A stretch of DNA of 64,000 nucleotides from Epithemia pelagica (Eukaryota; Protista; Bacillariophyta). Position numbers and translations under genes: made by a program. The notes under the pieces were generated by a model. It ran no database searches and was not told the DNA's origin. It saw only the letters and a program-made list of their open reading frames with translations. Position 1 is the stretch's first letter. Every line of letters begins with the position of its first letter. The stretch lies in contig OX337238.1 of NCBI GenBank assembly GCA_946965045.2, positions 124,001 to 188,000 of the forward strand, read 5' to 3'. Of the stretch, positions 16,089 to 37,505 are shown in pieces.

Positions 16089-16552
16089 CTGCGATATATA
16101 TACATGGAAGTCTGCCGCAAACGGGGGTGTTTCACACATGTTCTCTTACAAAAAAAAACACGAGGGGTGAGTGTGGAATCCACAAAGGACTACTGTATGA
16201 ATTGATTTATAGATCATACGTGTACCGATACGACTCTTCTTTGTCTCTCAAGTATACGGTAGCGTTTCTTGTGATTGTGTGTGTGCGTGTGCGGCAGGAA
16301 CCCAAGAAGGAAACAAGGTTGAAACCGCTCAAGGACGACATCAGGACGAAACGAACAGAACGAGAACCACTCCCGTCGTCACGAGCATATGGTCTAAACG
16401 TATGGGTCGATTTCGAAGACTGTGTGAACTATAGATGGAGGAATCGAAACAAGTCTTCTTTGTGATTGACAATATCAGTTTCTATTTCTGTGTTCGCTTA
16501 TTTATTTTTTCATTATAAAACTCAATGGAGCGGTCTTGGAGATCCACTTGCA

Positions 16553-17947: not shown

Positions 17948-18229
17948 AATGTTTGTTTCTATCCTTGTTGTTCTCTTGACCAGAAGTAAAATTGTGAGCT
18001 TAACGAGGGAGGATGATAGATATCCAATGGACTCTCGAATCCTTGTCCATGTGGTTGCATCTCTAGGTAGGCAACCGTACGAGTGCTACTACTAGAGGCT
18101 TTGAATCTTGTCAAAATTTGATACGATTGCGACAGAATGTCCATCAATCCTACTCGCATCTTTGAATTAATCTGGACTATTGGGTAGATTGAGTCTTTCT
18201 TGATAGCACTCGATTGGGTTTAGAATTCA

Positions 18230-19200
18230 GTCACAGTTCCGAGTCAACGATTACATCATATCGATCCAATAATGAAAATGTACATATGATAATTATATTA
18301 TATTAGATGCGAACAGATTGGTTGTAGAAGACGAAATGACCGGTACTGGGTAGGTTCCGAATAGCTACCCCTTTCAATGAGACTCCGTGATTCAGGAAAT
18401 TGCGTCTCAATGCGGTATCTCTCTCTCGAACTTTTTTGCAAATATAGGCGTTGTACCATTGGATCTATCCCGTACGAATGGAGGACAAACAATACCAGAG
18501 CACGCCGCAGCAACATTGATCTACCAGTAGTATCCACCTCATGGATTCAATCGTTTCAAATCTTACCGATATACTAGACTCTTGTCGTCCGTAATCGCAT
18601 GGATGATCCATCTCCAATCTCGACATGCCAGAGTTCGCTTCTCGGCAAACGGCCAATCCTCCATGGGCCGTGTCCCGGCATTCCCTCGGCGAGGTGCCAA
18701 GCGAGCGTGCCCATCAAGCACCATCGCAACCACTATTGGTTCCACAACAAGAAGCGGTTCGGCCGGGGTCCCCCGAAACGACCCACAGAAGGACAATGGC
18801 ACACAATAGTATAAGACCATGGACACCGGACAAGAAGAACACGAATGGATTTTTCGGCGAGGATTTGGATGACAGGAACCAAAACGACAACAAGAACCCA
18901 ACTCCTACTACTGTGTTGTCTCTCAAGAAGAGCAAGAACAAGACGAAGTGGTTCCATTGGTCCAGTGTTCTTGTAGAGACGACCCCCTCGTTACACCAGT
19001 CGTTCATGCTTACCGTTGGAGTCGTATGGCGTACGTCGTTATTGTCCACGATACCCCCACCATCCTTCTTTTGCTTTCTTGTTGTACAAGGTAGCAAGTC
19101 AACTTGTGTTTTTTCCCCTCTGGGTTCCTCCCTGTACAGGATCCAAAGCGGTTGTTTTCTTTCTTGAGGACTGGATTCCATGTACGACGACTCGTAGAAC
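18230..19200. repeat. Intergenic repeat R, copy 1, left part; continues at 25373-26226 and 32307-32450, interrupted by the two Copia elements
   Basis: Collinear with 39170-41230 and 43800-45634 once the two elements are removed. Confidence 0.85.
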
Positions 19201-19438
19201 TGTTGAAACTTCTAACAAGCCGTGCCGTAAAAGCAACTCTTTATAGGCTTATCGAACTACGTATTCTCCATTGAATGAGCGTTGGCTCTCTTGTTCGTTC
19301 TTTCGTTGCTTTTGCCACGTCTACAAACCAATGTCCATGATTCCGCATCTTGCGAATGGCCTATATCTTGCGAATGGCCAGTCGCACCAGTCGCACCTTG
19401 GTCCTCTATATTCACCGGTTGCTCTGCTATCCTCAACA
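19201..19438 (-). repeat. 3' LTR of Copia element 1
   Basis: Identical to 25135-25372 by direct comparison; ends TGTTG..CAACA. Confidence 0.97.
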
Positions 19439-22400
19439 CACTCCTTTGTGCCGAGGAATGATATTTACTATCCGATGGTACATTCATGATGATATCACGC
19501 AATTGGTAGAAGATGCGACCTTGTAATGGCTTGGTAAAAAAATCGGCGACCATCTCTTCAGTCGGACAGAATGCAATATCCATCTCTTTGCGCTTGATGC
19601 AGTCCGTGATATAAAAGTAGCGAAGGTTGATATGTTTGGTTCGCTTCGAACTGGATAGCCGTCCATTTTTCGCCAATAGAATACTACTCTGATTGTCTTG
19701 ATGTAGGGTTACGTCCTTGATCTCATGGCCTTGGGCCTGTATGAAATTCTTGGTCCAGATGATAGACGGGAGTACATCGTGTATCCCAATAAGTTCACAT
19801 TCAGTTGAACTACGGGCCACGAGTTTTTGTTTCGATGAAGCCGTCACCACTGCTCCTTTTCCCATGGTCATGAAACCCCCAGTGTGTCCTTTTAGATCGG
19901 GGTGAGTCGCATAAGATGCGTCAACCCACCACCACAGATGCATCATTGGGTCACCTTCTAGACGCAGGATCAAATCGCGTGTGGATTGTAAATACTTCAG
20001 AACCCGTCCGAGTTTGCGGTAGTCATCATCATCAGGAGCCATGACACGGGTGCTGAGAAAAGTTACGGCAGTCCGTATATCAGGGCGACCACGTTGTGCC
20101 ATATAAGCGAGTTGCATGGTCACACTGTGGAACCGGTCTGATTTTGTTTCATCCAGCTTGTGAGCCTTTGGGTTCACATGATAAAGGTGTTTGGCTGCGG
20201 GACTACGGGCTCGCCCAATCCATTCTTTTGGTAAGTCAAGTAGGATGGTCTCAAGATACGATCTCATATCCACTTGAACCACACCATCTTCCCCATAGTC
20301 GAGGAACATGCCAAGGTAATCGTGTCGAGTACCCTCAGACACTGAGATCTCGCCCAACTGTCCGAACTCCGCTCGTAGGTCATCCAAAAATTGATGAACT
20401 ACCTTGCCATCAACGTGCGAGACTTTTAAATCGTCAATATGCCACGTCACAGTGAGCTGTCGATCGTTTACTTGTTTGTTTGCAACACACGAGTCATATG
20501 GATTGATAACAAATCCCCAACTCTTGAGCACGGCGGTAAGCTTCTCCCAAAACAAACGAGCGGCACGAAGCGTGCCGTAAAGAGCTTTCAGCATCTCCAC
20601 ATAAATCACCGGTTGACCCTTCTCATAGGTCAAGAAAGGAGCGTAGGTGTCATAATCCACTTCCAGCAATAGCTCAGCCATCAACCCATCTAGTCGCATA
20701 TATACGTCGGGGTCCATGTCGGAGTGCATGAATGCCCCTGGTATATCAGCTACTGCAACCACGCGTCGTTCTAGAGCGTCAATCACGGCAGTGATGAAAA
20801 CGGATTCAGTAGCAACTGTGGGTGATGCCGATTCGGGTTTGTCAATATAAGCTCTTTGCTTTCTCCCGTCAGCGCAGCCTCTTCCTTTGATTTTGCCACA
20901 GCGCTTGCGTTTTAGGAACATCAAGTATCCTAACGCTTCTTGCACTTGGTTCCAAGTTAGATCAGTTTTATGAACAGCCCGTAGAACACCGCGGTCGTGT
21001 AACTGCTGTATCTCCACTTTCACAGCAGCCACGCCTTTATCACCGAACAACTTGATGCCTTTTTTCATGGGCATTTGTGGTGTGGCCATATTGATTTCCG
21101 TTGACACCAAATACAGGATTCCATCTCGCAAATAGCCATCGTAACGTCCATGCTGAAGCTTGTCCACTGCGGCATAAGAATGTCCGTAACGGTGGGCATA
21201 GCTTCTTTGTCGATTCGGCCGTAAATTGTATCGGGGTTCATTTTCGGGTTGGTTGTTGTTCTCCTGTTCAGGATCTACATCCATCCCTAAGTCCTCCTCT
21301 GTGAGAGATGCTTCTTCTTCGTTCTCCTCCTCTACTCCACCGGCTAGCTCCCTTCCCTCATCCTCCTCATCAGCATCCATATCCATCACAACATCCTCCA
21401 AAGCATCATCATAGGTCGAATCGTTACTGTCTTGTTCGTGCGCATCATGATATTGTTCATTGTCTACTGGGTCAGGCAGATTGGCTTCTGCCCCCACTCC
21501 TTGGATTTCCAACGGTTCAAGATTCAAATTGTCCAACGGCTGGTTGGGCTCTGGCTCGTTTATGACATTTTCAACATCAGGCACGTCATCTTCAGCTAAT
21601 TCATCCTCAACTAGATCATCGTCATACCGCAGATCCTCATCCATGTCCTGTACATCTTCATAGGACTCGTCATCATCATCAAACAGTTCATTGTTCTCGT
21701 CTAGGAACAAGATTCTGTTGTCACGATTGCCGAACGCTAGTCCCGGTTGCATTTCCTGACTTTGTGCCAACTGATGTACTCGTTGAATGACTTCTGCTGG
21801 CATAGGTAAAGCGGTGGCGTGATTCCTTGTGATTACTCTGCCGCTAGTGAGGCTAAGGAAGTAATAACTACCTTGCCTGTTACCGGTTGGCCTCAATGCG
21901 ATAGCTCCGATGGTTCTTGGGGCCATGGTGTTATCGTGCTGCTCATGGCACTGTACGTATTGGCCAAATTCATACCGACAATGTTTGTTGAAATCGACAT
22001 GCTCACCGGTCACGAGTAGACGTGGACTTTGTGTTTTGGAAATGCCGGTGTGATGTGGGAAGCAGTTTAACCAAAACGTGGCAAATTTGGCCAGTTCTAT
22101 CAACATGACCTTCGGTAGGGCATCGAAAGGAAGCGTGTTATAAACACAGCGCATCCTCTCCTTCACAGTCCTGATGTAACGTTCCACATCACCTACATGC
22201 TCGTCCCTGGCAGTGGAATTGATGGTGATGCCGAGGAGTTGAAGACTGGCTTGCATATCATCACTTGTAAATGCACCATCAGCCAACACAATCCTCGGTC
22301 TAATCCCGCCACGTCGGTAAACTGCCACAGTCTTCTTCAGGGATTGTACGATATTGGTGTCAGTGGTTGATTGTATGGCGTCTATCGTCCCGAAATGTAT

Positions 22401-24377
22401 TTTCCTTGACGTGGTGACAAGGAATGGTACATTGTTCACGTGCATGACGTCAATGGTCAATGTGACATCCTTGTGCTTCTCAGCAATACGAGGTGGTACT
22501 GTCGTGGACGTGTCGACAAATGGGGACTTACGTCTCGTTGTCTTGCCTTTGAGCGTTCCCAAATCTGGTCCGTAGATCTTCTCGGCCCTGTATACATCGT
22601 CAGTAGTGATGTTAGCGTTTGGTAGTAGGTTGTGCCTTAGGATATGAAGATAATCCTTGGTAGAAGGCCGTCCTATCTTCGCTAGGAGTGATCTGGCCAG
22701 CTTGGCTCTACGAATTTCTTCCGGGGAGTAGGAATCTTCGTTTTCGCTAACAGTTGTTACGAAGCTACTCTGTAACGTCGATGTATCCAGGTAGAATAAA
22801 CCTTCTGGGCTTGGATTGAACTTGTGTTTTAGCCTACCAGTGGCTCGGTCATGTAAGGCAAATGAATTTCCACGGTCGCTGTCATATTTGATGTGAAATC
22901 TTGTGTGTGCGTTGTTTAGGGAGATGATGTTGGCTGGACCCTCAGGATCATGCCATACGATGCCATATCCAGGCAGGAGTCCTCGCAACTGAAGAGTCCT
23001 CTGTCCGGCATGACTCTGAATGACGATGGGAGTCTCAGACGAGTGAATATTTTTTAATAAGGATGGATCTTTGATGATGTCAACGGTGGACTGATTGTCC
23101 AGTAACAGCCATTGAGGGGGAATGCTAGCCTGCATGGTAGAGGAAGAGAAAACATAATCAGGTGAGTCGCAGTTGACGGTTGAGCCCCTGTTTGATGAGG
23201 TTAGCACACCTCGATTGGATTCATTGTTACCCTCGGCTTGTGAGTTGGTTCGATTTGAGCGACTCTGTGTTGTCGATGCTTGGGAGCCACTTGCATGTGC
23301 TCCTGTTGCAGTTGTTGCATTGGAGTGGCCTGTCATGGTGGAATCGGGCAAACTCGTCTCTCCACTTGTTACATACGCCACACCGGTGGCGTTGTCGGGC
23401 TGACCGTTGCTCTGACCAGGATTGTTCTTTGGTTTTCCTGTCATTCGATTGTCCAGGATCGCACGAGCATTGGCAAGCGTCTTGGGGTATACATTCTGTC
23501 CATCCAAGAACATATTTTGCAAATGTGCTTCGTACTCCTTGTTGCCACAAGATCGGATGAATCGAATGGCAATACAACGATTTTGGGCGTCCTCGTGGTC
23601 GTCGGAAGAAGGTGTTGTGTGTTTCTTTTCCTGCGCCACTCGTTCCAACATGTCCTTATCGTACAGGACAATCCCTGCTTCATTCATGACCTTGACTTTG
23701 GCTCGGAATACCTCGTAATATGAATGGAGGCTTTGATTATTTCGTCGCCTCAGACTATAGAAATCCTCCTTGAGCTTATCTCGGGCGACAAGAGTGAATA
23801 TGCGTCCGGAATCAAAGGTGAATGTGATTTGCTTGATGAGTTTCAAGAGATCCACACCGTCACGCATCTTCTTGATCTCTCCAAAGGTCTCGTGGGCCTG
23901 TAGCTTATCCTTGAGTAGCGGAGTACACTGTCCCATAATCAAGCTGTATAGAGCTGCCCGAAAGTTTTTGTAGAGGACCATTTGATCTTGGCGTGCTTTG
24001 TACGCCATCTTCCACTCTTCCACTTGGATCATATCTGTGGGGTCTTTTGGTTTTGTTGCTTCTTCTGGGTCGGGTAGTTCCAATGCTTCGAGTGCTTGTT
24101 GGAACTCTTGATTGTGTCGATCAAAATTACTACCGACGTAGCCGATCAATAACTCGACGTTTCGTAGATAGCGCTTCGATTGCGGGTCCTCACTGTAGTC
24201 GAATATGCATTCTTTAAGCGACGGTTCTTGGCCTTGAAATCTAGGCGAGTTGGATTGTTGAGCCTGATTCTGCCATCCTCGTCCTCTTCCTCGTCCGCCT
24301 CTGCCTTGACGTTGTCCACTCGACCGGGAGCTAGACTCAACCGTGTCTGGACGATTTGCGTTGTCTTGTTGAGACAT
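19257..24377 (-). CDS. gag-pol: Gag-Pol polyprotein, 1706 aa, Copia order
   Basis: Protease WLLLDNQST; integrase TIDVMH, LADGAF, VERYIRTVKE; RT KGRGCADG and WHIDDLK; RNase H WVDASYA, STECE, QDNQS, ADFFTKPL. Confidence 0.97.
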   Translation of the reverse strand: MSQQDNANRPDTVESSSRSSGQRQGRGGRGRGRGWQNQAQQSNSPRFQGQEPSLKECIFDYSEDPQSKRYLRNVELLIGYVGSNFDRHNQEFQQALEALELPDPEEATKPKDPTDMIQVEEWKMAYKARQDQMVLYKNFRAALYSLIMGQCTPLLKDKLQAHETFGEIKKMRDGVDLLKLIKQITFTFDSGRIFTLVARDKLKEDFYSLRRRNNQSLHSYYEVFRAKVKVMNEAGIVLYDKDMLERVAQEKKHTTPSSDDHEDAQNRCIAIRFIRSCGNKEYEAHLQNMFLDGQNVYPKTLANARAILDNRMTGKPKNNPGQSNGQPDNATGVAYVTSGETSLPDSTMTGHSNATTATGAHASGSQASTTQSRSNRTNSQAEGNNESNRGVLTSSNRGSTVNCDSPDYVFSSSTMQASIPPQWLLLDNQSTVDIIKDPSLLKNIHSSETPIVIQSHAGQRTLQLRGLLPGYGIVWHDPEGPANIISLNNAHTRFHIKYDSDRGNSFALHDRATGRLKHKFNPSPEGLFYLDTSTLQSSFVTTVSENEDSYSPEEIRRAKLARSLLAKIGRPSTKDYLHILRHNLLPNANITTDDVYRAEKIYGPDLGTLKGKTTRRKSPFVDTSTTVPPRIAEKHKDVTLTIDVMHVNNVPFLVTTSRKIHFGTIDAIQSTTDTNIVQSLKKTVAVYRRGGIRPRIVLADGAFTSDDMQASLQLLGITINSTARDEHVGDVERYIRTVKERMRCVYNTLPFDALPKVMLIELAKFATFWLNCFPHHTGISKTQSPRLLVTGEHVDFNKHCRYEFGQYVQCHEQHDNTMAPRTIGAIALRPTGNRQGSYYFLSLTSGRVITRNHATALPMPAEVIQRVHQLAQSQEMQPGLAFGNRDNRILFLDENNELFDDDDESYEDVQDMDEDLRYDDDLVEDELAEDDVPDVENVINEPEPNQPLDNLNLEPLEIQGVGAEANLPDPVDNEQYHDAHEQDSNDSTYDDALEDVVMDMDADEEDEGRELAGGVEEENEEEASLTEEDLGMDVDPEQENNNQPENEPRYNLRPNRQRSYAHRYGHSYAAVDKLQHGRYDGYLRDGILYLVSTEINMATPQMPMKKGIKLFGDKGVAAVKVEIQQLHDRGVLRAVHKTDLTWNQVQEALGYLMFLKRKRCGKIKGRGCADGRKQRAYIDKPESASPTVATESVFITAVIDALERRVVAVADIPGAFMHSDMDPDVYMRLDGLMAELLLEVDYDTYAPFLTYEKGQPVIYVEMLKALYGTLRAARLFWEKLTAVLKSWGFVINPYDSCVANKQVNDRQLTVTWHIDDLKVSHVDGKVVHQFLDDLRAEFGQLGEISVSEGTRHDYLGMFLDYGEDGVVQVDMRSYLETILLDLPKEWIGRARSPAAKHLYHVNPKAHKLDETKSDRFHSVTMQLAYMAQRGRPDIRTAVTFLSTRVMAPDDDDYRKLGRVLKYLQSTRDLILRLEGDPMMHLWWWVDASYATHPDLKGHTGGFMTMGKGAVVTASSKQKLVARSSTECELIGIHDVLPSIIWTKNFIQAQGHEIKDVTLHQDNQSSILLAKNGRLSSSKRTKHINLRYFYITDCIKRKEMDIAFCPTEEMVADFFTKPLQGRIFYQLRDIIMNVPSDSKYHSSAQRSVLRIAEQPVNIEDQGATGATGHSQDIGHSQDAESWTLVCRRGKSNERTNKRANAHSMENT

Positions 24378-24382
24378 CTCGT

Positions 24383-25075
24383 TTAAACAATCGCAATGCT
24401 GTCACGATGGCGGCGGTGTTCTTCTGTATCTTTGGTGATGGGATTCCAAATCTTGATAAAGTGATATAATGTGCCGTGGCGCGACACTGTGCCTTGGAGA
24501 TGTGTTCGTCCCACTGTTTCCTTCAACTTGAGAGTATTCAATACCCAAACGCGAGTTCCAATTGGAATCCACCGTGGGAGTACGCCTCTTTGTGGTGGAA
24601 TATCGGGGATGATTGTTTCTGTTTCGATTTCACCGTCCGGTGTTTCTGGGCTCAGATCAACGAGAGCGACTGGAGATGCGCGACGATCTTGATTCTCTTC
24701 CGAATTGTTTTCTAGGTTCGGGTTTTCTTGGTTCGGTTCCACTAGATACGCGCTGTGCTCTGGGTATGTAGCCGCGCAGGATGATGGGCCTCGCTCAGCC
24801 CGCTTGATTTTGTCTAGCAACGTGCGTCGCTTTTCCTGTATCTCCTCGAAGATCAGCTGTTTCCGAATCTCCGTTTCCTCGTAATCGTTGTCTCTTTCGA
24901 TTTCTCGTTGTCGCTCCAGTGCAGCGATGGCTTCGCGATGCTGCGCCTCCTTGGTGCGAAAGCGTTGTTGGTAGCGCTGTTCCGCTTCGTGTAAGAGATC
25001 CTCTTGTTCGATAGTGAGTTGGGCCAGTTCCGATAATAAAGATTGTACGCGGTCACTTGTGCCCTCTTCACTCAT
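24383..25075 (-). CDS. Extra ORF1 of Copia element 1 (230 aa): coiled-coil plus small beta-barrel-like C-terminal domain
   Basis: ATG-initiated ORF between the PBS and gag, homologous to ORF1 of element 2 (IGxRVxV..GTVxRH..WNPIT..EE). Confidence 0.8.
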   Translation of the reverse strand: MSEEGTSDRVQSLLSELAQLTIEQEDLLHEAEQRYQQRFRTKEAQHREAIAALERQREIERDNDYEETEIRKQLIFEEIQEKRRTLLDKIKRAERGPSSCAATYPEHSAYLVEPNQENPNLENNSEENQDRRASPVALVDLSPETPDGEIETETIIPDIPPQRGVLPRWIPIGTRVWVLNTLKLKETVGRTHLQGTVSRHGTLYHFIKIWNPITKDTEEHRRHRDSIAIV

Positions 25076-25120
25076 AAGAGTACTTCACGTCAACAACGGA
25101 GGTACTTAGTGTAATGAATT

Positions 25121-25134
25121 TTCAATGGAGAATA
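25121..25134 (-). promoter_or_regulatory. Non-tRNA primer-binding site of element 1 (sense TATTCTCCATTGAA)
   Basis: Abuts the 5' LTR, has no TGG, and is a perfect complement of LTR segment 25196-25209. Confidence 0.85.
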
Positions 25135-25372
25135 TGTTGAAACTTCTAACAAGCCGTGCCGTAAAAGCAACTCTTTATAGGCTTATCGAACTACGTATTC
25201 TCCATTGAATGAGCGTTGGCTCTCTTGTTCGTTCTTTCGTTGCTTTTGCCACGTCTACAAACCAATGTCCATGATTCCGCATCTTGCGAATGGCCTATAT
25301 CTTGCGAATGGCCAGTCGCACCAGTCGCACCTTGGTCCTCTATATTCACCGGTTGCTCTGCTATCCTCAACA
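25135..25372 (-). repeat. 5' LTR of Copia element 1
   Basis: Identical to 19201-19438 and followed by the AGAAC TSD. Confidence 0.97.
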
Positions 25373-26289
25373 AGAACCGTCATCCAGGTCGTTCCGCAAT
25401 GGTCCACACAAGACAAAACGAGAACAAAGACTCCTCAGCTCTAGGTAGTGTCCTGATATTACTATATAGGATGCTGGCGCCAACCAACCAGAAATGAGGT
25501 TTTCTTTGCCATCACGATTGGACCGCAGGGCGACTGTCACCCCGTGCCGCGAGACAACCAGGTTCCATGGGCGTGTCACTACGACTAGAGAGCAATGGGG
25601 AGAACTGAAACTACGACCAGAAACCGGCAAACTGCTGGCAATCCCAAGAGACGTTTGATTGGTGGTATATCCTTTTCCATGCTTCTGCTGCTACTGCTGG
25701 AATCCTGGTTGGTCAGACACAACCAAAAGAATTTGGATTTGAGTAAAGAGAAGAGCACATTCATTTTGTGAGAGACCGTCGTGGCTTGCACCCAAGTCGG
25801 CCCTGCCGGCGCGGGAGTAGGCGACCTCGCGACCGACGAGACCCATTTCGTCTGTCCATCGATGCGACCTTCATCGGAAGAGAGATTCTTCGCGCACGTC
25901 TCGAGTACTTTGGAGCGTTGGGATAATTTTCTACGAACTATATTCTTCGTATCAACATGGTCTGTAGACGCTGTAGGTGTACACGTCTGGAGATGCGACA
26001 TTCTCTGGGATTCTCCCAGCGGGGTTGGTGACACCTTGGACGTGCGTACGTGCGTTGATTTTCTCATTGGAACCCGCTCAGGATTGGACGAGAACTGTGC
26101 CGGAGTGAATGCGAACCCCCAAGTTCTTGGCGCGAACCGAGTTCTCGTTGGATTGGCGTAGTTCGGTTTGGTGTCACGAGGTAGAACGCAAGAGAAGACC
26201 CCAAGGGATCATTCCTTATTCGACACTGTTGAAACCAGTCAACCGATCGTGCTGTACAGGCAACAAAAGGAAACCAATTTACTTCTATT

Positions 26290-29200
26290 TTAAAAAGAAT
26301 GAGCGTTTTGTTGCGTCTCCTCCGGTTTGTAATGACTGCACCTCTTACGTGGTTGCACCACTTGCCATTCGGCTTCCTTTGGGTTCGTCATCCTCTGTAC
26401 TCTCTTGGGAGTCGCGGTTTGGTCCTGTGTTTCCTTGGGCGTGCTATCTTGTCTCAACACACTCCTTCGCGAGGAATGATAGATATCAGTGCTCGGGATA
26501 TTCATGATAAGATCACGGAACTTGTAAAACAAGTTACCTTGAAGCGGTTTCGTATGGAAATCGGCGATCATTTCTTCCGTGGGACAATGTTCAATTGTCA
26601 GTTCCTTGTTATCGACTCGATCTTTAATGAAGAAATATCGAATGTCGATATGTTTGGTACGTTTGCTGCTGGAGGCTCGTCCGTTTTTCTCCAACAACAT
26701 TGCACTCATGTTATCTTGGAATAATTTCATCTCCTTGACTTGATAACCTTGTGCGATCAGGAATTGCCGACACCAAAGCATATTTGGCATGGCATCATGG
26801 ACACCGATGAGCTCGCTCTCGGTGGAACTACGAGCTACCAACTTCTGTTTTGATGAGATGCTCATCGCGGCTCCTTTTCCCATCATCATTACGCCCCCGG
26901 TATGCCCGCGCATGTTAGGATGGACGGCATAGGATGCGTCCACCCACCATCGAAGAATTCCGGTCCCATCACAATTTAACCGAAGAAGCAAGTCGGGTGT
27001 TGTTTGGAGGTATTTCATCACACGCGACAACTTACGCCAATCATCCTTGGTTGGTTCTTTCACTCGGGTACTGAGGAAAGCTACGGCCGCTCGGATGTCA
27101 GGTCGTCCACGTTGGGCAATATACATCAGCCTCATGGTGAAACTGTGAAACTGGTCTGCCTGGTCGCTATCCAACTGCTCGGCTCCATCTTGCAGATGGA
27201 AAAGATGAGAGGCTGCTGGGGTTTGTGCCACCCCTTTGAACTCCTTTGGTACATCATCGATGATACTCTGTATGGCGGTCCTCATGTCAACAATCAACTG
27301 CCCTGGCTCGCTATAATCAAGGTACATGCCCAAATAGTCATGGCGTTTCCCTCTTGAGATCGAAAGCTCACCTTGTTGACCGAATGTGGCTTGTATTTGT
27401 TCTATGATACTGCTGACCACGCTTTCTTCCTTGTGTGATATTTTGAGGTCGTCAATGTGCCATGTGATGGTGCATTGCGACCCATCGATTGTTTTGTTAG
27501 CCACACAACTGTCATATGGGTTCACAATGAAACCCCACTCCTTGATGACGGCAGTTAACTTCTCCCAAAACAGTCTTGCCGCTCGCAAGGTGCCGTACAG
27601 GGCACGAAGCAATTCAACGTAGATGACGGGCTCGCCTTTCTCGACCACAACGAATGGTCTGTACATTTTCTCATCAATTTCAAGCAACAATTCAACCATG
27701 AGCCCGGTGATTCTCATGTGCACCCCAGGGTCCATCATGGCCTGCATAAAGGCCCCTGGAATATCCACTACTGCCACGGCCCTTCGTTCCATTGCATCAA
27801 TGATTGCACTTAGGAAGACGGCCTCTGTTGCGACTGTGGGAGAAGATGCATCTTCTTTGTTTATGTATTCGCGTTGTTTACGGCCATCTGCGCAGCCCCG
27901 TCCTTTAATTTTCCCGGTTCTCTTTCTCTTCAAGAACATCAAGTATCCAAGCGCTTGTCGGATTTGTTGTTTGGTCAATGAGCTTTTCATAATGGCTCGC
28001 ATTACTTCCCGGTCATGCAACTGCAGGACTTCCTTTTTCACTGCGGCCACGCCTGCATCACCAAACAATCGCACTCCTTGTTTCATTCCCATTTGGGGTG
28101 TCGACACGTCTTGCGCCACTTCGGCAGTAACATAAATGTCATTGTTGTATCGATGGGCATAGTTCCGTTCTCGATTCGTCCGTAGATTATATCTAGGGTG
28201 AATGGGTGCTGCCACAGCATCACCGCCGCCGCCAACAATTCCACCGCCAACACCATGGATGTTGGGTTGTTGCATGGGTGGTTGCTCGGGTTGTGGGCCC
28301 ACTCCTTGATTTGGCACGGGTGCCACTCCTTGATTTGCCTCCACTCCTTGATTTGCCTCGATTAGTTCTTGATCTGCAACAGCCTGCTCCACATAGTCAG
28401 CATGTAGTTGTTCCTCATGAGCATCAATGTCGACTCCTTCCTGTACTCCATCATCGTTTCCTCCTCCTTCTACGACTCCATCCACTGGACCATTAAGATC
28501 CAAACCAAGGCCCACGTTATCTCCATCCTCGGGGCCATCCTCGGGACCATCCAACTCCTGATCCTCTCCTATCGCTTGATCATTAAGATCGTAATCGTTC
28601 TCATTTCCCACTTCTTCCATGACCAACTCCTCCACCGGGTCCTCGTTCACCGTCGCCAACTCATTATCGACGATATCCTCATCATACCTCAATACATCAT
28701 CCTCGTCGTCCACATCATACTCATAATCTTCATCATTTCCTTCGTCAAAATCATCGTATTCCAAAGCCAAGATGCGGTTGTCCCTATCCCCAAAAGCAAG
28801 ATTCGGATATGCCTCCTGGGCAACAGCCAATTGGTACACTCGCTGGAGGGCAATATCAGGCATAGGAACAATCGTGGCATGGTTCCGATTGATGACACGA
28901 CCGGATAACAAGTTCAAGAAATAATGGCCACCCTGTTGGTTGCCAGTTGGGCGAAGGGCCAGTGCTCCTTGGGTTCTTGGCTCCATGGAATTGTCGTGTG
29001 GCTCATGGGTCTGGACGTATTGTCCAAACTCATACTTGCAGTGACGGTTATAATCCAGTTGTTGGCCGGTGACGAGGGTCTTTGGGCTCTGCTCGTCCGA
29101 TATTCCATTGGCAGCTGGGAAGGCATTCAGCCAATAGACGGCGGCTTTTGCCATTTCAATCACCAACACTTTTGGCATGTGTTTGAATGGGAGTGTATTA

Positions 29201-29967
29201 TACATACACCTCATTCTTTCCTTTATGGTACGAATGTACCGTTCGATGTCGCCGACATGTTCATCTCGGGATGTCGGGTTCAAGCTCATGCCAATCCCAT
29301 GGAGAAATTCATTCATGGGTTCATTATCAAATGCCCCGTCGGCGAGAAGAATTCGAGGGCGCAAGTTGCCACGACGATAGATCGATACTACTTGTTTGAT
29401 TGCCGTGAAAAGTGTTGGTCCATTGAGTGCCTTCAATGCGGTAATCGTCCCGAACTTGATGAAGCGAGAGATCGTCGCTAGGAATGGGATCCCGTTGACA
29501 TGAAGTACGTCCATGCAAAGGACAACATCGTGATATTTCTTTGGTATTGGGACATCGATCATGAGAGAGGCGTCAACTTGCATGGGACGCTTTCGAACCG
29601 TCTTGCCTTTCAAGGTACCTATGTCGGGCCCCAGCATCTTTGCGGCTAATTTGACATCCTTGCTAGTGAAAGGACAATTGGGTAGCAACCGCTTGTCCAG
29701 GATTGAGCTGAATTCTCTGTCACTTGGTCGACCTATTTTAATCTGCAATGATCTAACTCCTTGTGCTCTAGCGACGTCATTTGCTGTGTACTTAGCTTTA
29801 TTTGTAGCTATCGTAGTGACCAGTCCAAATTCAGTTGCGGCAGATCGGGAGGACCAATCAGAGTAATAGAGACCTTGGGGACTTGCGCGGAATATGTCAA
29901 TGAGTGCGCCTGTGCGGGATCGAACATGAAATGAGTGCGCCTGTGCGGGATCGAACATGAAATTCAT
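26290..29967 (-). CDS. pol: Pol part (IN-RT-RNase H) of element 2
   Basis: LCMDVLH, LADGAF, IERYIRTIKE, KGRGCADG, WHIDDLK, WVDASYA and ADFHTKPL motifs. Out of frame with gag because of the 29900-29961 duplication. Confidence 0.93.
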   Translation of the reverse strand: MNFMFDPAQAHSFHVRSRTGALIDIFRASPQGLYYSDWSSRSAATEFGLVTTIATNKAKYTANDVARAQGVRSLQIKIGRPSDREFSSILDKRLLPNCPFTSKDVKLAAKMLGPDIGTLKGKTVRKRPMQVDASLMIDVPIPKKYHDVVLCMDVLHVNGIPFLATISRFIKFGTITALKALNGPTLFTAIKQVVSIYRRGNLRPRILLADGAFDNEPMNEFLHGIGMSLNPTSRDEHVGDIERYIRTIKERMRCMYNTLPFKHMPKVLVIEMAKAAVYWLNAFPAANGISDEQSPKTLVTGQQLDYNRHCKYEFGQYVQTHEPHDNSMEPRTQGALALRPTGNQQGGHYFLNLLSGRVINRNHATIVPMPDIALQRVYQLAVAQEAYPNLAFGDRDNRILALEYDDFDEGNDEDYEYDVDDEDDVLRYDEDIVDNELATVNEDPVEELVMEEVGNENDYDLNDQAIGEDQELDGPEDGPEDGDNVGLGLDLNGPVDGVVEGGGNDDGVQEGVDIDAHEEQLHADYVEQAVADQELIEANQGVEANQGVAPVPNQGVGPQPEQPPMQQPNIHGVGGGIVGGGGDAVAAPIHPRYNLRTNRERNYAHRYNNDIYVTAEVAQDVSTPQMGMKQGVRLFGDAGVAAVKKEVLQLHDREVMRAIMKSSLTKQQIRQALGYLMFLKRKRTGKIKGRGCADGRKQREYINKEDASSPTVATEAVFLSAIIDAMERRAVAVVDIPGAFMQAMMDPGVHMRITGLMVELLLEIDEKMYRPFVVVEKGEPVIYVELLRALYGTLRAARLFWEKLTAVIKEWGFIVNPYDSCVANKTIDGSQCTITWHIDDLKISHKEESVVSSIIEQIQATFGQQGELSISRGKRHDYLGMYLDYSEPGQLIVDMRTAIQSIIDDVPKEFKGVAQTPAASHLFHLQDGAEQLDSDQADQFHSFTMRLMYIAQRGRPDIRAAVAFLSTRVKEPTKDDWRKLSRVMKYLQTTPDLLLRLNCDGTGILRWWVDASYAVHPNMRGHTGGVMMMGKGAAMSISSKQKLVARSSTESELIGVHDAMPNMLWCRQFLIAQGYQVKEMKLFQDNMSAMLLEKNGRASSSKRTKHIDIRYFFIKDRVDNKELTIEHCPTEEMIADFHTKPLQGNLFYKFRDLIMNIPSTDIYHSSRRSVLRQDSTPKETQDQTATPKRVQRMTNPKEAEWQVVQPRKRCSHYKPEETQQNAHSF

Positions 29968-31369
29968 CGTTGTTGGCTTGGTATGAGATGCTGTACTGTT
30001 GCTTTACTTGATGGAATGATAGTATGTTGACCCAGCCGCTCTCATAGAACCATACGGCTCCATAATCTCGGACTTGGGCTGTTTGTGATGTGGTGATTGT
30101 TCCACCATGCCCCTTGATTCTCATGGTTTCTTGGCTAGGCTTCGGTGGACTGACGAGTAATGATGTGTTGGAAAAGATGTGAATGGTGGCCTGGTTATCC
30201 AGGAGGACCCATGTTGGTGGAATGTTAGTCTGTGAAAGCGTGGCAATAGAAAGACAAAGTGAGTCTGAGGCATTTTCAGATACACAACAATCAGCGGAGT
30301 TCGAACCTCGGTTGGTATCACTATGCTGTGACTCGTTGGCTGTTTCGCCAGTAGTTGGATAAGCAAGACCTGTATTGTCTGAGCCTTGCGCTTGCGAGCC
30401 ACTGTTTGATTCATTCTGGTTGTTGTTGTTGTTGCTGTTGAGCTCACGACGCCCCATGCGTGCATCGATAATTGCACGGGCATCAGCGAGATTTGATGGG
30501 TAGATGATGTGCCCATCCAAGAAGTTGTTGTGTAGATGCACTTCGTAGTCTTTTTGGCCGCAAGCACGAATAAATCGATTCGCTATCATGCGGTCCTGCG
30601 CTTCCTCGTTATCAGCCATTGACGGTGCACCTGGTCGGCCATTCTTTGCGGCGATTTCTTGGACATAGGCCTGATCGAAGAGGAGAATTCCTACCTCATT
30701 GATTACCTTGACCTTCGCCCGAAATGCCTCATAGAAACTATGGACAGACTGTCCGGGGTGTCGTTTCATCCCATAGAAATCGGCACGGATCTTATCCATC
30801 GCCATTCCAGTGTAGACCCTGTCGCTATCAAAAGTAAATGTCGTAGCCTTGATCAACTTCAACAACTCGATGCCGTCTCGATGAGCTTGTATGGAGGGGA
30901 AGGAACTATGGGCCTTGAGCTTGTCCTTCATTAGGTCCGTTGATTGACCAAGAAGAACACTATAGAGCGATGAGCGGAATCCTTCAGTAGCCACGCGCTT
31001 CTCGTCAATTGCTTTGTACTGAAACTCCCATTCTTTTATTTCAATAGGACTAGCAGTGTCGGATGGACGTGGTGGACGAGGAGGTGTAGGCAAAGATAGA
31101 TTTTCAACGGCACGCTGGAAGTCCATATTGTACTTCGGGAACTTGATGCCGATATATCCAATCAGCAGTTCCACGTTCCGAATGTATTTTTTGGCTTGGG
31201 CGTCTTGTGTATAATCAAACACGCATCCCTTCAACAAGGGTTCCTGCCCTTCAAACTTGCTCTGGCCATTGTTGTTTCTACCTCCACGTCCCCCACGACC
31301 TCGACCACGGTTATTGCCTCGTCCTCCTCTGCCACCACCGGAATTAACATTGTCTGGTGACTGACTCAT
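29897..31369 (-). CDS. gag: Gag-protease part of element 2
   Basis: RGG-rich N-terminus, collinear with element 1 Gag (FxGQEPxLKxCxFDY) and protease motif WVLLDNQAT. Confidence 0.9.
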   Translation of the reverse strand: MSQSPDNVNSGGGRGGRGNNRGRGRGGRGGRNNNGQSKFEGQEPLLKGCVFDYTQDAQAKKYIRNVELLIGYIGIKFPKYNMDFQRAVENLSLPTPPRPPRPSDTASPIEIKEWEFQYKAIDEKRVATEGFRSSLYSVLLGQSTDLMKDKLKAHSSFPSIQAHRDGIELLKLIKATTFTFDSDRVYTGMAMDKIRADFYGMKRHPGQSVHSFYEAFRAKVKVINEVGILLFDQAYVQEIAAKNGRPGAPSMADNEEAQDRMIANRFIRACGQKDYEVHLHNNFLDGHIIYPSNLADARAIIDARMGRRELNSNNNNNQNESNSGSQAQGSDNTGLAYPTTGETANESQHSDTNRGSNSADCCVSENASDSLCLSIATLSQTNIPPTWVLLDNQATIHIFSNTSLLVSPPKPSQETMRIKGHGGTITTSQTAQVRDYGAVWFYESGWVNILSFHQVKQQYSISYQANNDEFHVRSRTGALISCSIPHRRTH

Positions 31370-32025
31370 TCTTGTAGGATGATGAGATTGACGGGCTTTC
31401 GCTTAAATTCTTCGTTGCGTCTGGTGATAGGGTTCCAGACTTGGATCCACGTGTAAGTATCAGTGTGTCGAAGCACTGTTCCTGTTGCGTTGTGTAAAGG
31501 GTGTCGATGACGTGCGAGGCGAACAGGGGTTTCCACTCGGACTCGTGCTCCAATAGGTGGAAAGATAATGCCTTGTTGATTCTCAACGGCTCGGGCTTGC
31601 ACTTGTATGGCTCTTGGTTCGTTCACTATCTCGAGATTTCGAGGATCTTCGATCACAACTTGAGGTTCTTCAACCGCTTCCAGTTCCACAACTTGAGGGT
31701 TCCCTTCGCCCTGTGCTTGTGTTACTTCTGCCTCTTGTGCAATCCGATATGCCCTATCGCGATCGGCTTCTCGTTGATTACGGTGTTCTTGCAGGGCCCT
31801 TTGATGTCGTTCGTGTTCTTCACCTTGTGCTCGTCGATATCGTTGTTCCAGTTCTGCTGTATCGGCCCAATACTGTCGGTCAATAGCTCTGAGTCTGGTT
31901 TCGTGATCTTCGTTGAGTCGGCTGGCTTGCCCTTCGTGTTGAAGGTTCAACCGCACGAACTCACGGATTAATACGAGTACAGGCGTTTCGTCAGTAGGTA
32001 GGGAGTTTTGATTTTGATCCGACAT
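31366..32025 (-). CDS. Extra ORF1 of Copia element 2 (219 aa from the first ATG)
   Basis: Starts MSDQNQ at 32025, has a coiled-coil and a C-terminal domain homologous to element 1 ORF1. Its stop overlaps the gag ATG (ATGA at 31369-31366). Confidence 0.8.
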   Translation of the reverse strand: MSDQNQNSLPTDETPVLVLIREFVRLNLQHEGQASRLNEDHETRLRAIDRQYWADTAELEQRYRRAQGEEHERHQRALQEHRNQREADRDRAYRIAQEAEVTQAQGEGNPQVVELEAVEEPQVVIEDPRNLEIVNEPRAIQVQARAVENQQGIIFPPIGARVRVETPVRLARHRHPLHNATGTVLRHTDTYTWIQVWNPITRRNEEFKRKPVNLIILQE

Positions 32026-32059
32026 GCACTCAGGCTTTGAGGTGAACAACAGTGTTAAC

Positions 32060-32073
32060 TTCTTTTTAAAATA
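32060..32073 (-). promoter_or_regulatory. Non-tRNA primer-binding site of element 2 (sense TATTTTAAAAAGAA)
   Basis: Abuts the 5' LTR and is a perfect complement of LTR segment 32133-32146. Confidence 0.85.
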
Positions 32074-32451
32074 TGTTGAAACCAGTCAACCGATCGTGCT
32101 GTACAGGCAACAAAAGGAAACCAATTTACTTCTATTTTAAAAAGAATGAGCGTTTTGTTGCGTCTCCTCCGGTTTGTAATGACTGCACCTCTTACGTGGT
32201 TGCACCACTTGCCATTCGGCTTCCTTTGGGTTCGTCATCCTCTGTACTCTCTTGGGAGTCGCGGTTTGGTCCTGTGTTTCCTTGGGCGTGCTATCTTGTC
32301 TCAACAGACACCCTGCACGGGCCCATTCGGCAGTATATCCCCTCATTGATTCTTCCTTTTTGGACGATCTATATTCATAAAATCAGCAACGTTTGAACGC
32401 TCTCCACCAACCAACCAATCCATCCCCTTTCGAGAAAAAGCCAATCCAGCG

Positions 32452-34082
32452 GTGGCAATCCCTATGGTGGACCAGGAGGCGGAGGAGATCCCTACAATCC
32501 CTATGGAGGAGGAGGAGGTGGAGGTCCCTTAAATCCCTACGGAGGAGCCGGTGGAGGTGGCGGTCCGTTCAATCCCTATGGTGGAGGTGGTGGAGGTGGA
32601 AACTTTCCCGACATGATTAACAATTTTGGTGGTGGTGGCAATCAGCAAATGGGAGGTCCCCCGCAATATGGACGAGGCATGCAAGAACAACCAGAGGAGG
32701 AAGACGAAGACGATGAGGAGGATGACAAGCAACAACAGCAGCAGCAGCAACGTCGCGCTGCCGTGAACGAACCAAACAAGCCCAACGACACGGCAAACAA
32801 GAAGGACAATGACGAATGGGTCTTGCAACAAATTGTCCAAGGCAAATTGCAATTGGTGGATTTGGAACTCCGTCACGATCGGGTTGCGTTCATGTTGCAA
32901 AAGCATCAATCGTCATCGTCATTGGACTATGCCAAGTTGATCCAGGCCAGTTTTTGTCCCCTTGATTGGTCCTCGCACGAACAAGATCCTTCCCAAACAC
33001 CCATGTTCCGCATGGTGGTCCACCAATCGCCGCAGTGTCGCGACGAAGAGGATTGGTACGACATTGACTTGTATCGCGTCGTGGAAGCCCTCCAGCAGCA
33101 ATCCAGCACCAAAGCGGCCGCGCCAATTCTCGACGTGGCCGGAGTCGTCTTTCACGAATCGCGCTGTGGATCCACGCTCGTGGCCAATTTGTTGCAATGG
33201 CACAATCCCCAAGAGAATATTGTGTACAGTGAATCGGCACCCATGATTGCTGCCTTGACTGCCTTGCAAAAGAAACCACACGAAACCTCCCAACACGCCA
33301 AAGACCAACAACGCGCCTTGCATTTGCAAGTCTTGAGAGATGTCGTTCGTGTCATGTCCATTGCACCCGCCGCCTCCCACAAGCGTCGCGTCTTTTTCAA
33401 GATTCAATCCAAGGGCACAACGGCCCTGAACATGTTTCAACAAGCCTTTGCGGACACGCCGTGGATCTTTGTCTATCGCGATCCGGTCGAAGTCTTAATG
33501 AGTCATTTGCATCCGTCCGATCATCCCGACATGCGACCGGAACAAGCCCTTTGTGTCAAATCGCAACAGTGGGGACCCCCCGCGGACGTGAAACACGTTG
33601 TCCAACAGTATGCTCCCGCTGCCACGTCGGCCCGTGAGTTGACGCCCACGGACTATTGTGCCGCCCATTTGGCTACCTTGACCGAAGCCGCCACACGGGC
33701 CTTGACGTCCAACAGTAGTAGTGGTGGAGTGGCGGTGAATTACCAGGATTTGCCCACTATCTTGATTGAGGATATTTTGCCCAAGGTGTGGAAGTTGGAA
33801 GTCAATGAGGCGGCCCGACATCGCATGGAACAGGGCAGTACCACTTATAGCAAGGGGGGCATTCATGCCACATCCGACGCGCGCGGCAAATTTGTCAGTG
33901 ATGTCGCCTCCAAACAAGAACGGGCCTCCCCGGCCATTGTTTCGGCGGCACAAACCTATTTGCAACCCTCCTATACCAAACTGCAAGCCTTGGCCCACCA
34001 AGCCCACGAACACCATCACTTTACGACGACAACAAAAACAACAACATCAAAAACAACAAGCACAAGTACTACGACCAAGTAA
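32452..34082 (+). pseudogene. 5'-truncated copy of sulfotransferase-like paralog B (ORF 32613-34082) joined behind the FNT upstream region
   Basis: Highly similar to 14.5-16.1 kb but starts inside the Gly/Tyr repeats and has no TM anchor. The upstream 32307-32450 matches the FNT leader at 41040-41230. Confidence 0.75.
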
Positions 34083-34639
34083 ATGCGATATATATACATG
34101 CAAGTCTGCCGCAAACGGGGGTGTTTCACACATGTTCTCTTACAAAAAAAAACACGAGGGGTGAGTGTGGAATCCACAAAGGACTATTGTTTGAATTGAT
34201 TTATAGATTATACGTGTACCGATACGACTCTTTCTTGTCTCTCAAGTATACGGTAGCGGTTCTTGTGATTGTGTGTGTATGCGGCAGGAACCCAAGAAGG
34301 AAACAAGGTGGGAACCGCCCAACGACGACATCAGGACGAAACGAACAGAACGAGAACGCCCCTCTCTGGCTAGATCAGCCGAAAAATACCTACGTTGGAC
34401 TCCCCCACGAAGAAAAAAAGACTCTTGTTTTTCAATAGGACGACACAACAGTACTCCTGTCGTCGCGAGCATGGTCCAAACGCATTGGTCGATTTCGAGG
34501 ACTGTCTGAACTATGAATGGAGGAATCGAAACAAAAGTCTCCTCTCTGATTGACAATATCAGTTTCTATTTCTGTGTTCGCTTTTTTATTTATTTTCTTA
34601 TAAACTCAATTGAGCGGTCTTGGAGATCCACTTGCACTA

Positions 34640-36019
34640 TTACACCGCAACAAGAACAAACATCATGAAAAGACCAACAAGAACAGTGACCATTCCACCT
34701 CCGGCGCGAGCAAAGGCCGCACTCGTGCCAGTCAAGGAAGTGTCACCTTCCACCGCATCGACCGTGTCCTCCATGACTTGGACCAATTCCGTATAGGTGC
34801 AAGGCAAAAAGACTTGGGTACTGTCCAACGCAGCATCCTCACCATCGACCAAGGCACTGGGAGCGTATTGGAGACAAACGTCCATGCTCGTGTCGTCGTC
34901 ATCATTTTGGCTTTCGGCCAAGACGCGATTGTTATTGTCTGGCCCATCGAGGCTCAGAGTGACGGCCGTTTCTTCGGCCAAGGGATCGTCCAGAGAAGGA
35001 ACTGCAGCGGCACAGGAAACATCGCATGTCTCGTCCGTGATATTCGCCACTTGATTGACCAAACAATCCATCAATTCTTCCAAGGGATCCAAGACGCAGG
35101 GAGGACAACACGACACAATTTCACACGTGGGTGCAATGAGCTCGGTTTGAATGTCGGCACAGGTTGTCAAGGCGGAGTAATTGACGCCCGCAAAGGGATT
35201 GCCCAAGGGCAATTGCGCACTGCAATTGGCACGACAAGTGGCCGCGTTTTCACGACCACATTGATGCAAACTTCGAAGCGCTTGACGGATGCAAGAACGA
35301 GGATGATTCTGACGAGCTTCTTGAATCGTTTCATTCAAACAGTCTGCCACTTCGTCCAAACAGAGAGCCGTGGCATTGATAAAGCGTTGGCGGCGTTTTC
35401 GGCGGTTCTCGCGACGATTCTGGTATCGTTCAAACAAGTCCGACAAGGGCGTCGTATCTTCTGGTTCTTCCTCCACCTCGTCCACCAGTTCCGGATCATT
35501 CTCTTGAATGCATTCCACCAACTCAGCAAAGGTTGTGCCATTGGAGGACGTCTCGGGATCTCCCTCGGCATCAGTATCCACAACATTTGTATCATTGCCA
35601 AAAATGACACAGTCCTGACGATCCGCGTACCGTTTCACACAGTCGTACAAGTCTTGAGGATCGGTGGTGCGAAAACAACGAGGCAACCAGAGATAAATGG
35701 GATTTTGACTGGCCGCGTCCCAAAACTCTCCTGTTTTTTCCGGGCGATCGCTGTCTTGATCTCGGTCCGGACCCCAAAAGGGAAAGTTTTGACGAAAGTT
35801 GGCTGCCCGGCCACGACGGCCATCACCTTCTTCGGTTCCACTGCCTTGTTCCGTAGTCGAGCCATCACGCGGACCACCACCTAGACCAAAGCCTTGAAGG
35901 TTTCTTTGAGGACCATTGCCATGACGACCCAGGGCACGAAGTTCTTGAGAGGTGACACCCATCATTCCCACTGTCCAAAGGACAAAAGTCATTGCGCTAG
36001 AACTTGAAACCACCTTCAT
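34640..36019 (-). CDS. Cys-rich secreted/anchored protein, copy 2
   Basis: Intact 459-aa ORF nearly identical to copy 1. Confidence 0.75.
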   Translation of the reverse strand: MKVVSSSSAMTFVLWTVGMMGVTSQELRALGRHGNGPQRNLQGFGLGGGPRDGSTTEQGSGTEEGDGRRGRAANFRQNFPFWGPDRDQDSDRPEKTGEFWDAASQNPIYLWLPRCFRTTDPQDLYDCVKRYADRQDCVIFGNDTNVVDTDAEGDPETSSNGTTFAELVECIQENDPELVDEVEEEPEDTTPLSDLFERYQNRRENRRKRRQRFINATALCLDEVADCLNETIQEARQNHPRSCIRQALRSLHQCGRENAATCRANCSAQLPLGNPFAGVNYSALTTCADIQTELIAPTCEIVSCCPPCVLDPLEELMDCLVNQVANITDETCDVSCAAAVPSLDDPLAEETAVTLSLDGPDNNNRVLAESQNDDDDTSMDVCLQYAPSALVDGEDAALDSTQVFLPCTYTELVQVMEDTVDAVEGDTSLTGTSAAFARAGGGMVTVLVGLFMMFVLVAV

Positions 36020-36267
36020 AATGTTTGTTTCTATCCTTGTTGTTCTCTTGACCAGAAGTTAAATTGTGAGCTTAACGAGGGAGGATGATAGATGTCCAAT
36101 AGACTCTCGAATCCTTGTCCATGTGGTTGCATCTCTAGGTAGGCAACCGTACGAGTGCTACTACTAGAGGCTTTGAATCTTGACAAAATTTGATACGATT
36201 GCGACAGAATGTCAATCAATCCTACTCGCAACTTTGAATTAATCTGGACTATTGGGTAGTATTAATA

Positions 36268-36427
36268 CTTCCCGGTGTCGAGTCCTTTCAAGGAGGGACC
36301 GCCCGGCGCGGAGGGTAGAATGACGAGGAGGGCAATGGTCGAGGAGGGCGCACGCCCGACAAGACAATTGCCCGTCGAGTCATTCTCCCGACAAGCCGGG
36401 CGCGCCCGACGGCGAGACACAGGGAAG
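36268..36427. mobile_element. 160-bp GC-rich MITE-like element with TA flanks (Tc1/mariner-type signature)
   Basis: TIR CTTCCC(G/T)GTGTC, with TA on both sides (36266-36267 and 36428-36429). Absent from the homologous position in array copies 1, 3 and 4. Confidence 0.6.
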
Positions 36428-36438
36428 TAGTAAACTTA

Positions 36439-36631
36439 CTCCCTATCAAGCTGTGTAGGTAGTGAGGATTTCCTGGAAGCCATGTCACACAAGTGTCACA
36501 CAAGTGTCACACAATTGTCACACACGAGAGGGAAACCGCGCGACTCGCACGAAACTACTTTCCGGTCGTACAAAAATTCTTACTGTAGTATAAAAATGTG
36601 AGACGAACTACCTACACAGTCTGGTATGGAG
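36439..36631. mobile_element. 193-bp MITE-like element with TTA flanks
   Basis: 25-bp TIRs matching at 21/25 positions (36439-36463 and 36607-36631). TTA on both sides, internal GTCACACAA tandem repeats, and absent in the other array copies. Confidence 0.65.
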
Positions 36632-36896
36632 TTAGATTGAGTCTTTCTTGATGGCACTCGATTGGGTTTAGAATTCAGTCACAGTTCCGAATCAAGAAAA
36701 TCCGACTTCTGCATCATATCGATCCAATAATGAACAGGTACATATTATTGGTATATTAGATTAGATGCGAACTGATTGGTTGTAGAAGACGAAATGACCG
36801 GTACTGGGTAGGTTCCGAATAGCTACCCCTTCCAATGAGACTCCGTGATTCAGGAAATTACGTCTCAATGCGGTATCTCTCTCTCGAACTTTTTTG

Positions 36897-36953
36897 CATC
36901 ACTTTACCACGACAACAACAACAAAAACAACAAGCACCACCACGACCAAGTAA
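36897..36953 (+). pseudogene. Last ~18 codons of the sulfotransferase-like gene joined to truncated repeat R
   Basis: CATCACTTTAC..ACGACCAAGTAA matches 16020-16088, followed by the same 3' flank. The junction has 2-bp CA microhomology. Confidence 0.8.
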
Positions 36954-37505
36954 ATGCGGTATATATACATGCAAGTCTGCAGCAAACGGGTGTGTTTCAC
37001 ACATGTTCTCTTACCAAAAGACACGAGGGGTGAGTGTGGCATGGAGAAACAACTACTGTATGAATTGATTTATAGATGATTCTACATGTACCGATACGAC
37101 TCTTCTTTGTCTCAAGTATACGGTAGCGTTTCTTGTGATTGTGTGTGTGTGTGTGTGCGGCAGGAACCCAAGAAGAAAACAAGGATGGAACCGCCCAACC
37201 ACGACATCAGGACGAAACGAACAGAACGAGAAAAACCCACTCTGACTCCATCAACCAAAAAATACCTACACGTTGGACTCCCCACGAAGATAGTCTTGTC
37301 TTTTTATCGGACGACATCACAGCGCTCCCGTCGTCACGAGCATGATCAAACGCAGTTGTGGTCGATTTCGAAGACTGTGAACTATAGATGGAGGAATCGA
37401 AACAAGTCTTCTTTGTGATTGACAATATCAGTTTCTATTTCTGTGTTCGCTTATTTATTTTTTCATTATAAAACTCAATGGAGCGGTCTTGGAGATCCAC
37501 TTGCA

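Follow-up and report, generated by a model that had tools for sequence, protein, structure and literature searches.

Judging from their sequences, element 2, a young copy and one of two complete LTR retrotransposons arranged head to tail on the minus strand of the window (the whole 64,000-nucleotide stretch of Epithemia pelagica DNA analysed here), and the diatom Ty1/Copia clade to which it belongs very probably start reverse transcription by Tf1-like self-priming, with the element's own RNA serving as the primer. The 14 nt that directly follow its 5' LTR, at 32073-32060, form the perfect reverse complement of an LTR site at 32146-32133, with 59 nt between the two sites. The first-pass annotation had described this match and placed it right after AACGCTCA, and we confirmed both its letters and its coordinates. 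The same layout was found in element 1, where TATTCTCCATTGAA complements TTCAATGGAGAATA at 14/14 positions. An anchored 14-nt perfect complement at the LTR end would arise by chance at a rate of only ~8e-7 per element, and, as a control, the sequence following the 3' LTRs yielded complements of ≤6 nt.

The two window elements and their LTR-PBS match

The features of element 2, and those of element 1 as its comparator, are as follows:

26227..32306, minus strand: element 2, a complete Ty1/Copia LTR retrotransposon of 6,080 bp, with identical LTRs, a target duplication and an RVT_2 reverse transcriptase (RT)
32307..32311, minus strand, with the other copy at 26222-26226: 5-bp target-site duplication GTGTC of element 2
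32074..32306, minus strand: 5' LTR of element 2, 233 nt, TGTTGAG...TTTCAACA, 233/233 identical to 26227-26459
32147..32154, minus strand: AACGCTCA, ahead of the element 2 self-primer, its last three bases being TCA
32133..32146, minus strand: predicted self-primer of element 2, TTCTTTTTAAAATA, putatively nt 1-14 of the transcript, at the start of R, a perfect complement of the PBS with a homologous site in all relatives
32074..32132, minus strand: spacer of element 2, 59 nt, the rest of R plus U5, from the alignment and the minimum-energy fold
32111->32096, minus strand: conserved hairpin GTTGCCTGTACAGCAC within the spacer of element 2, from the alignment
32060..32073, minus strand: predicted primer binding site (PBS) of element 2, TATTTTAAAAAGAA, adjoining the LTR end
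31366..32049, minus strand: ORF1 of element 2, 227 aa, upstream of gag-pol, no Pfam match
26290..31369, minus strand: gag-pol of element 2 in two overlapping open reading frames, 29897-31369 and 26290-29967, with the RT at residues 682-865 of the second
26460..26468, minus strand: polypurine tract of element 2, GAAGGAGTG, directly upstream of the 3' LTR
26227..26459, minus strand: 3' LTR of element 2, in which the self-primer site recurs at 26299->26286
19201..25372, minus strand: element 1, with identical LTRs of 238 nt (25135-25372 and 19201-19438) and target duplication GTTCT
25209->25196, minus strand: predicted self-primer of element 1, TTCAATGGAGAATA, complementing the element 1 PBS
25134->25121, minus strand: predicted PBS of element 1, TATTCTCCATTGAA, matching the element 1 LTR site

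The LTRs of the window elements are of the TG...CA type (TGTTG...AACA), and the junction between polypurine tract and LTR, AAGGAGTG/TGTTG, is kept across families. Common to both elements is a separate ORF1 between the PBS and gag-pol (227-230 aa; 24383-25075 in element 1, 31366-32049 in element 2), for which no Pfam match was obtained at E values up to 1. The gag-pol frames of element 2 overlap at 29897-29967, a single frame of ~1,700 aa being present in element 1 and in C7:632524, a close relative of element 2. The split may reflect programmed frameshifting, or a mutation that shifted the frame in a copy with as yet identical LTRs.

Upon comparing the two elements, we found that their PBSs differ at positions 5, 7, 8, 10 and 11 and that every one of these five changes is mirrored in the LTR, precisely as had been reported in the earlier annotation. 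Its description of the rest of the LTRs as 'largely unalignable' was overstated, however, as about half of the columns are identical between the LTRs of elements 1 and 2. The identical columns fall into recognisable blocks, namely the TGTTGAG start, AACGCTCATTC, the U5 hairpin (GTTGCYTKTACRGCAC) and the GTTTCAACA end.

Primer and PBS pairs among relatives

Complementarity of the PBS to the element's own LTR was not confined to the window, and we found it to extend throughout the relatives in the same genome. A search of the 60.5-Mb assembly with the element 1 RT returned at least 93 places at 39-100% identity. For 50 RT loci, the regions of the 5' LTR with leader and of the 3' LTR were taken, and the LTR ends were set by comparing the 5' with the 3' LTR. 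The own-genome count refers to the n=40 elements with recovered LTR pairs, both window elements included; eleven loci with one LTR outside the sequence taken (L004, L007, L012, L016, L025 and L026, as well as L028, X12, X14, X15 and X17) are not part of it, and L012, with one LTR unrecovered, still has a primer/PBS pair. A perfect 14-nt duplex was present in 37/40 elements and a 13/14 match in the remaining 3/40. These three are older or degenerate copies: L024 and L019 have diverged LTRs, and the RT of X16 is the most distant (39% identity) in a survey whose RT identities ranged from 39 to 100%. The 3' arm begins at the first base past the LTR in every own-genome case, and the 5' arm is found 46-78 nt upstream of the LTR end, after an A that is usually within CTCA. 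At least 11 different duplexes coexist in the window's genome, with every copy matching its own LTR. At one place (L031 / L009, C6:3385400-3386400), the 3' internal sequence of another copy precedes the 5' LTR, indicating a tandem array that shares an LTR.

Among elements from other records, the duplex was perfect in 9/10. The diatom assembly ERZ25042306 contains four elements with the same architecture in other letters; since neither a 14-mer nor a 17-mer taken from its primer sites had a match in the window's genome, it represents an independent genome. Two ERZ21939226 loci, by contrast, come from the organism of the window itself and do not count as independent. The duplex also occurs in three metagenome contigs (JGI 3300046534, JGI 3300061568 and ENA ERZ27249623). 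Metagenome contigs of 5.9-6.1 kb were considered as full-length transcripts and rejected, as they are assemblies with collapsed LTRs and do not start at the 14-mer. In Mayamaea pseudoterrestris, the element L100 (BROI01000014.1) retains only 7 nt of its PBS beside an internal deletion, and the intact PBS predicted from its LTR, TTTTCTCCAAGAAG, is carried in exactly this form by a second element of that species, L113, which has identical LTRs and the target duplication CAGAT. L100 lost part of its leader and the 3' half of its PBS to the deletion, and the LTRs of this copy are 100% identical and accompanied by a target duplication; either it was mobilised in the deleted state, or the deletion followed insertion.

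In total, 19 distinct primer/PBS pairs were found, with a median difference of 7/14 positions. We quantified their covariation on 21 representative segments, aligned without gaps over both arms. These representatives were extracted with the duplex as the landmark; the 3' arm, however, is positioned by the LTR end irrespective of the duplex, and the survey that supplied them yielded no intact element lacking it. Standard pairs made up 99.7% of the 294 cells in the 21 representatives, and none of the cells held a G-U pair. Double-sided change was seen in 13/14 pairs and one-sided change only in none. The covariation score amounted to 0.83, compared to 0.18 for shuffles and ≤0.24 for slid registers, and RNAalifold, run with no structure supplied, returned exactly the 14-bp helix. 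The covariation first described between two elements is real and extends to this much wider set.

Minimum-energy folds of five families were all closed by the 14-bp stem, with z-scores of -3.2 to -5.3, and the fold of element 2 contains an internal stem-loop inside this closing stem. The U5 hairpin GTTGCYTKTACRGCAC lies in the primer-PBS spacer of most own-genome families (32096-32111 and 25142-25168 in the window), and a (C)GWAGT motif recurs after the 14-mer. Hairpin and motif together may correspond to the additional structure required by Tf1.

Because 19 duplexes were found and 13/14 pairs changed on both sides, the PBS evidently follows the LTR of its own element rather than any fixed cellular RNA. 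The first-pass annotation had read the covariation as selection for base pairing rather than for a fixed tRNA sequence, and this reading is supported. As a refinement, the lack of G-U or one-sided intermediates in the 294 cells suggests that, beyond selection on compensatory mutations, the PBS may be re-copied from the RNA primer in each replication cycle, that is, by templated rewriting.

Placement within Ty1/Copia

Both window elements scored above the 31.6-bit cut-off for PF07727 (RVT_2), with 50.4 and 39.3 bits. As scores in the putatively self-priming clade reach only 39-50 bits, compared to ~160 bits for other Copia lineages of the same genome, the clade constitutes a divergent group. 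For element 1, we modelled polyprotein residues 540-900 (pLDDT 78.6) and obtained a Foldseek match to retroviral integrases at E ~1e-9, with the RT located downstream of the modelled integrase at residues 1159-1379. An integrase fold upstream of the RT corresponds to the Ty1/Copia gene order, and, by homology with element 1, the same fold is predicted upstream of the RT in element 2. Neither Pfam at E values up to 1 nor a profile search of PDB sequences detected integrase, protease or RNase H. Downstream of the RT, the RNase H-like motifs DAS...TESE...D are conserved (alignment A4).

The nearest named homologues of the clade are found in the diatoms Mayamaea pseudoterrestris and Nitzschia sp. 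Nitz4. On the RT tree, the duplex-bearing elements form one clade with 100/100 support, which fits the earlier proposal of a self-priming Copia clade. A long branch separates this clade from two other RVT_2 lineages of the same genome, and, within it, the PBS variants follow the subclades. L115 and L116 offer a weak contrast as outgroups: no LTR-PBS complement of ≥8 nt was found in L115, a different RVT_2 lineage whose LTR end is not cleanly defined, and no LTR pair was found within 8 kb for L116. Other Copia lineages account for at least 150 additional RVT_2 matches in the genome, and several of these have very long open frames (2,700-2,900 aa).

Self-priming, rival primers and known systems

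The sequence ahead of the duplex would fit a transcription start at its first base. The base preceding the duplex is always an A, with TCA in 20/24 rows, and nearly all families have a purine-rich stretch ending in YCA ahead of it. For P. tricornutum, TCAH(+1)W has been put forward as an initiator-like motif, with +1 right after TCA (PMC4686930). The TCA before the duplex fits this motif, in which case +1 would be the first duplex base and the 14-mer would be the 5' end of the RNA; in three families, a G follows the TCA, which is outside the H of the published motif. A search for sequencing runs returned no RNA run, and the four runs that contain the sequence consist of genomic DNA contigs (longest 443-509 kb).

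In LTR reverse transcription, the primer 3' end defines the U5 boundary, and hence the pairing partner of the first bases after the LTR is expected to be the primer. In these elements, that partner is a sequence of their own LTR, and we regard this position as the main argument for self-priming. We propose that transcription would begin in the 5' LTR just past ...CTCA, and that the first 14 nt of the RNA would fold back across the R/U5 spacer of 46-113 nt to pair with the 14 nt after the LTR. RNase H would then cleave between nt 14 and 15, where the duplex ends on its 3' side, and the freed 3' OH would be extended into U5. Following the general scheme of LTR reverse transcription, the primer would remain attached and be copied during plus-strand strong-stop synthesis, with the consequence that the PBS would be rewritten from the R sequence in each cycle, and perfect Watson-Crick pairing would persist even as the letters change. 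One altered base in R could thereby reach the PBS without a second independent mutation. The sequences themselves show the anatomy, the placement of the site, the covariation and no recognisable cellular match for the 14-mers, whereas we infer transcription start, cleavage and PBS rewriting.

Alternatively, the primer might be a cellular RNA. The PBSs start with TA or TT and never with TGG, which makes pairing with a tRNA 3' CCA end impossible, and no tRNA gene is located within the window. A tRNA, half-tRNA or other host RNA might nonetheless pair with the PBS, the LTR match being incidental, as half-tRNA primers such as 1/2 tRNA-Met and 1/2 tRNA-Ile are used in other Copia lineages (PMC6317226). 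We consider this extremely improbable, because one host RNA cannot match all of the 19 different PBSs of closely related elements, which differ from each other at half of their positions in the median (7/14). Furthermore, exact whole-genome matches to the two window 14-mers, at 40 and 32 sites with 0 for the reversed-pattern control, show the spacing of 5' LTR, PBS and 3' LTR, except for a few lone sites that are maybe solo LTRs. Given the absence of a TGG start, the 19 PBS variants and the element-like spacing of the exact, full-length 14-mer matches, tRNA priming was set aside as very improbable.

The duplex itself could also serve another role, as a leader RNA structure for packaging, dimerisation, translation control or stability, with the real primer being another cellular RNA; such a structure would show the same complementarity. 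Many retroelements have stable, covarying leader helices, and the fold, although well supported, is by itself no proof of priming. Yet such a role appears improbable, as in every family the 3' arm starts with the first base past the LTR, where it fills the position of the primer 3' end and leaves no room for a separate PBS, and as neither a TGG-type nor any other conserved site follows it. Moreover, zero G-U pairs in 294 cells is unlike the outcome of selection on RNA structure alone and fits a copying of the primer at the DNA level. The same 14-nt sequence might, on the other hand, prime in trans, with a short RNA from the LTR transcript of another copy, or the partner RNA within the particle, annealing to the PBS in place of an intramolecular fold-back. 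The sequence evidence is the same for cis and trans, and several near-identical copies exist per family, but we regard trans priming as quite improbable: each of the at least 11 duplexes in one genome matches its own LTR, which is simplest if primer and PBS share a molecule, and the conserved spacer length (mostly 55-70 nt) together with the U5 hairpin suggests a defined intramolecular fold.

Returning to self-priming in cis, we lean slightly towards a broader reading, in which self-priming would be ancestral and universal in a deep diatom-specific Copia clade, independent of Tf1/sushi and of plant TAR, with each element's own 5' end rewriting its PBS in every cycle. If so, the primer/PBS pair could drift freely (19 variants, at least 11 of them in one genome, and no wobble intermediates) and would constitute a natural record of information flow from primer to PBS, possibly even a family-specific identity tag.

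Self-priming was demonstrated in Tf1, and the Tf1/sushi group of Gypsy elements is inferred to share it. For Tf1, base pairing with the PBS involves nt 1-11 of the transcript, and the RNase H cut falls between nt 11 and nt 12 (PMC7175516). The diatom elements resemble Tf1 and Tf2 of Schizosaccharomyces pombe, and the Tf1/sushi group, in that a PBS beside the 5' LTR complements the start of the element's own transcript, a putative start in the diatom elements, so that the RNA would fold back and need no tRNA; a structured U5 between the two arms is a further likeness to Tf1. By contrast, the diatom duplex measures 14 nt (up to 17) instead of 11 and has a spacer of 46-113 nt. Furthermore, the diatom elements are Ty1/Copia, with an RVT_2 RT and the integrase before the RT, and not Gypsy chromoviruses; neither the Gypsy RT-RH-IN order nor a Gypsy-type RT was found in them. 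By analogy, they would be elements that work like Tf1 outside the Tf1/sushi clade.

The plant TAR Copia lineage (Houba, Osr-1) has been predicted to self-prime (PMC6317226), and here, too, a Copia PBS is predicted to pair with the element's own RNA and not with a tRNA. The host in our case is a diatom (a stramenopile), and the likeness concerns the priming prediction. In the fungal Copia clade GalEa, a 'conserved hairpin site', a local palindrome for which its authors found no LTR complement, replaces the PBS (PMC5445492). GalEa is similar in lacking a tRNA-type PBS and in having a conserved structure at the PBS position, whereas the pairing partner in the diatom element lies in the LTR, as in Tf1. 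The CoDi elements of P. tricornutum (Blackbeard, Surcouf and others) are likewise diatom-specific Copia-like LTR elements with short LTRs, and their founding paper is silent on PBS or priming (PMC2806351). That paper reports diatom Copia-like elements to be stress-activated and to contribute to genome evolution (PMC2806351). Full-text literature searches found no paper linking diatom elements to self-priming and no description of how reverse transcription starts in diatom Copia-like elements. The mechanism itself is known, and we found no paper on its occurrence in diatoms.

If self-priming is indeed at work, the clade would need no host tRNA and would join Tf1/sushi and plant TAR as a third, probably independent, lineage with this mode of priming. 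With 19 naturally occurring primer/PBS variants, a set of compensatory 'mutants' is at hand for tests of the mechanism. LTR annotation tools that seek tRNA-type PBSs will miss or misjudge these diatom elements, and a rule that the PBS complements the element's own LTR would detect them.

The surroundings of the two elements are themselves repetitive. The DNA to the left of element 1 (14294-19045) recurs to the right of element 2 (32456-37038), with a start-to-start spacing of ~18.0 kb and 94-100% identity in most blocks (61-86% in some), so that a duplicated segment flanks the two-element block on both sides. More copies of this segment are located at ~37.4-39.5 kb and ~42.0-44.1 kb, and a repeat of 39-nt spacing is present at 14294-14680 and 32456-32635.
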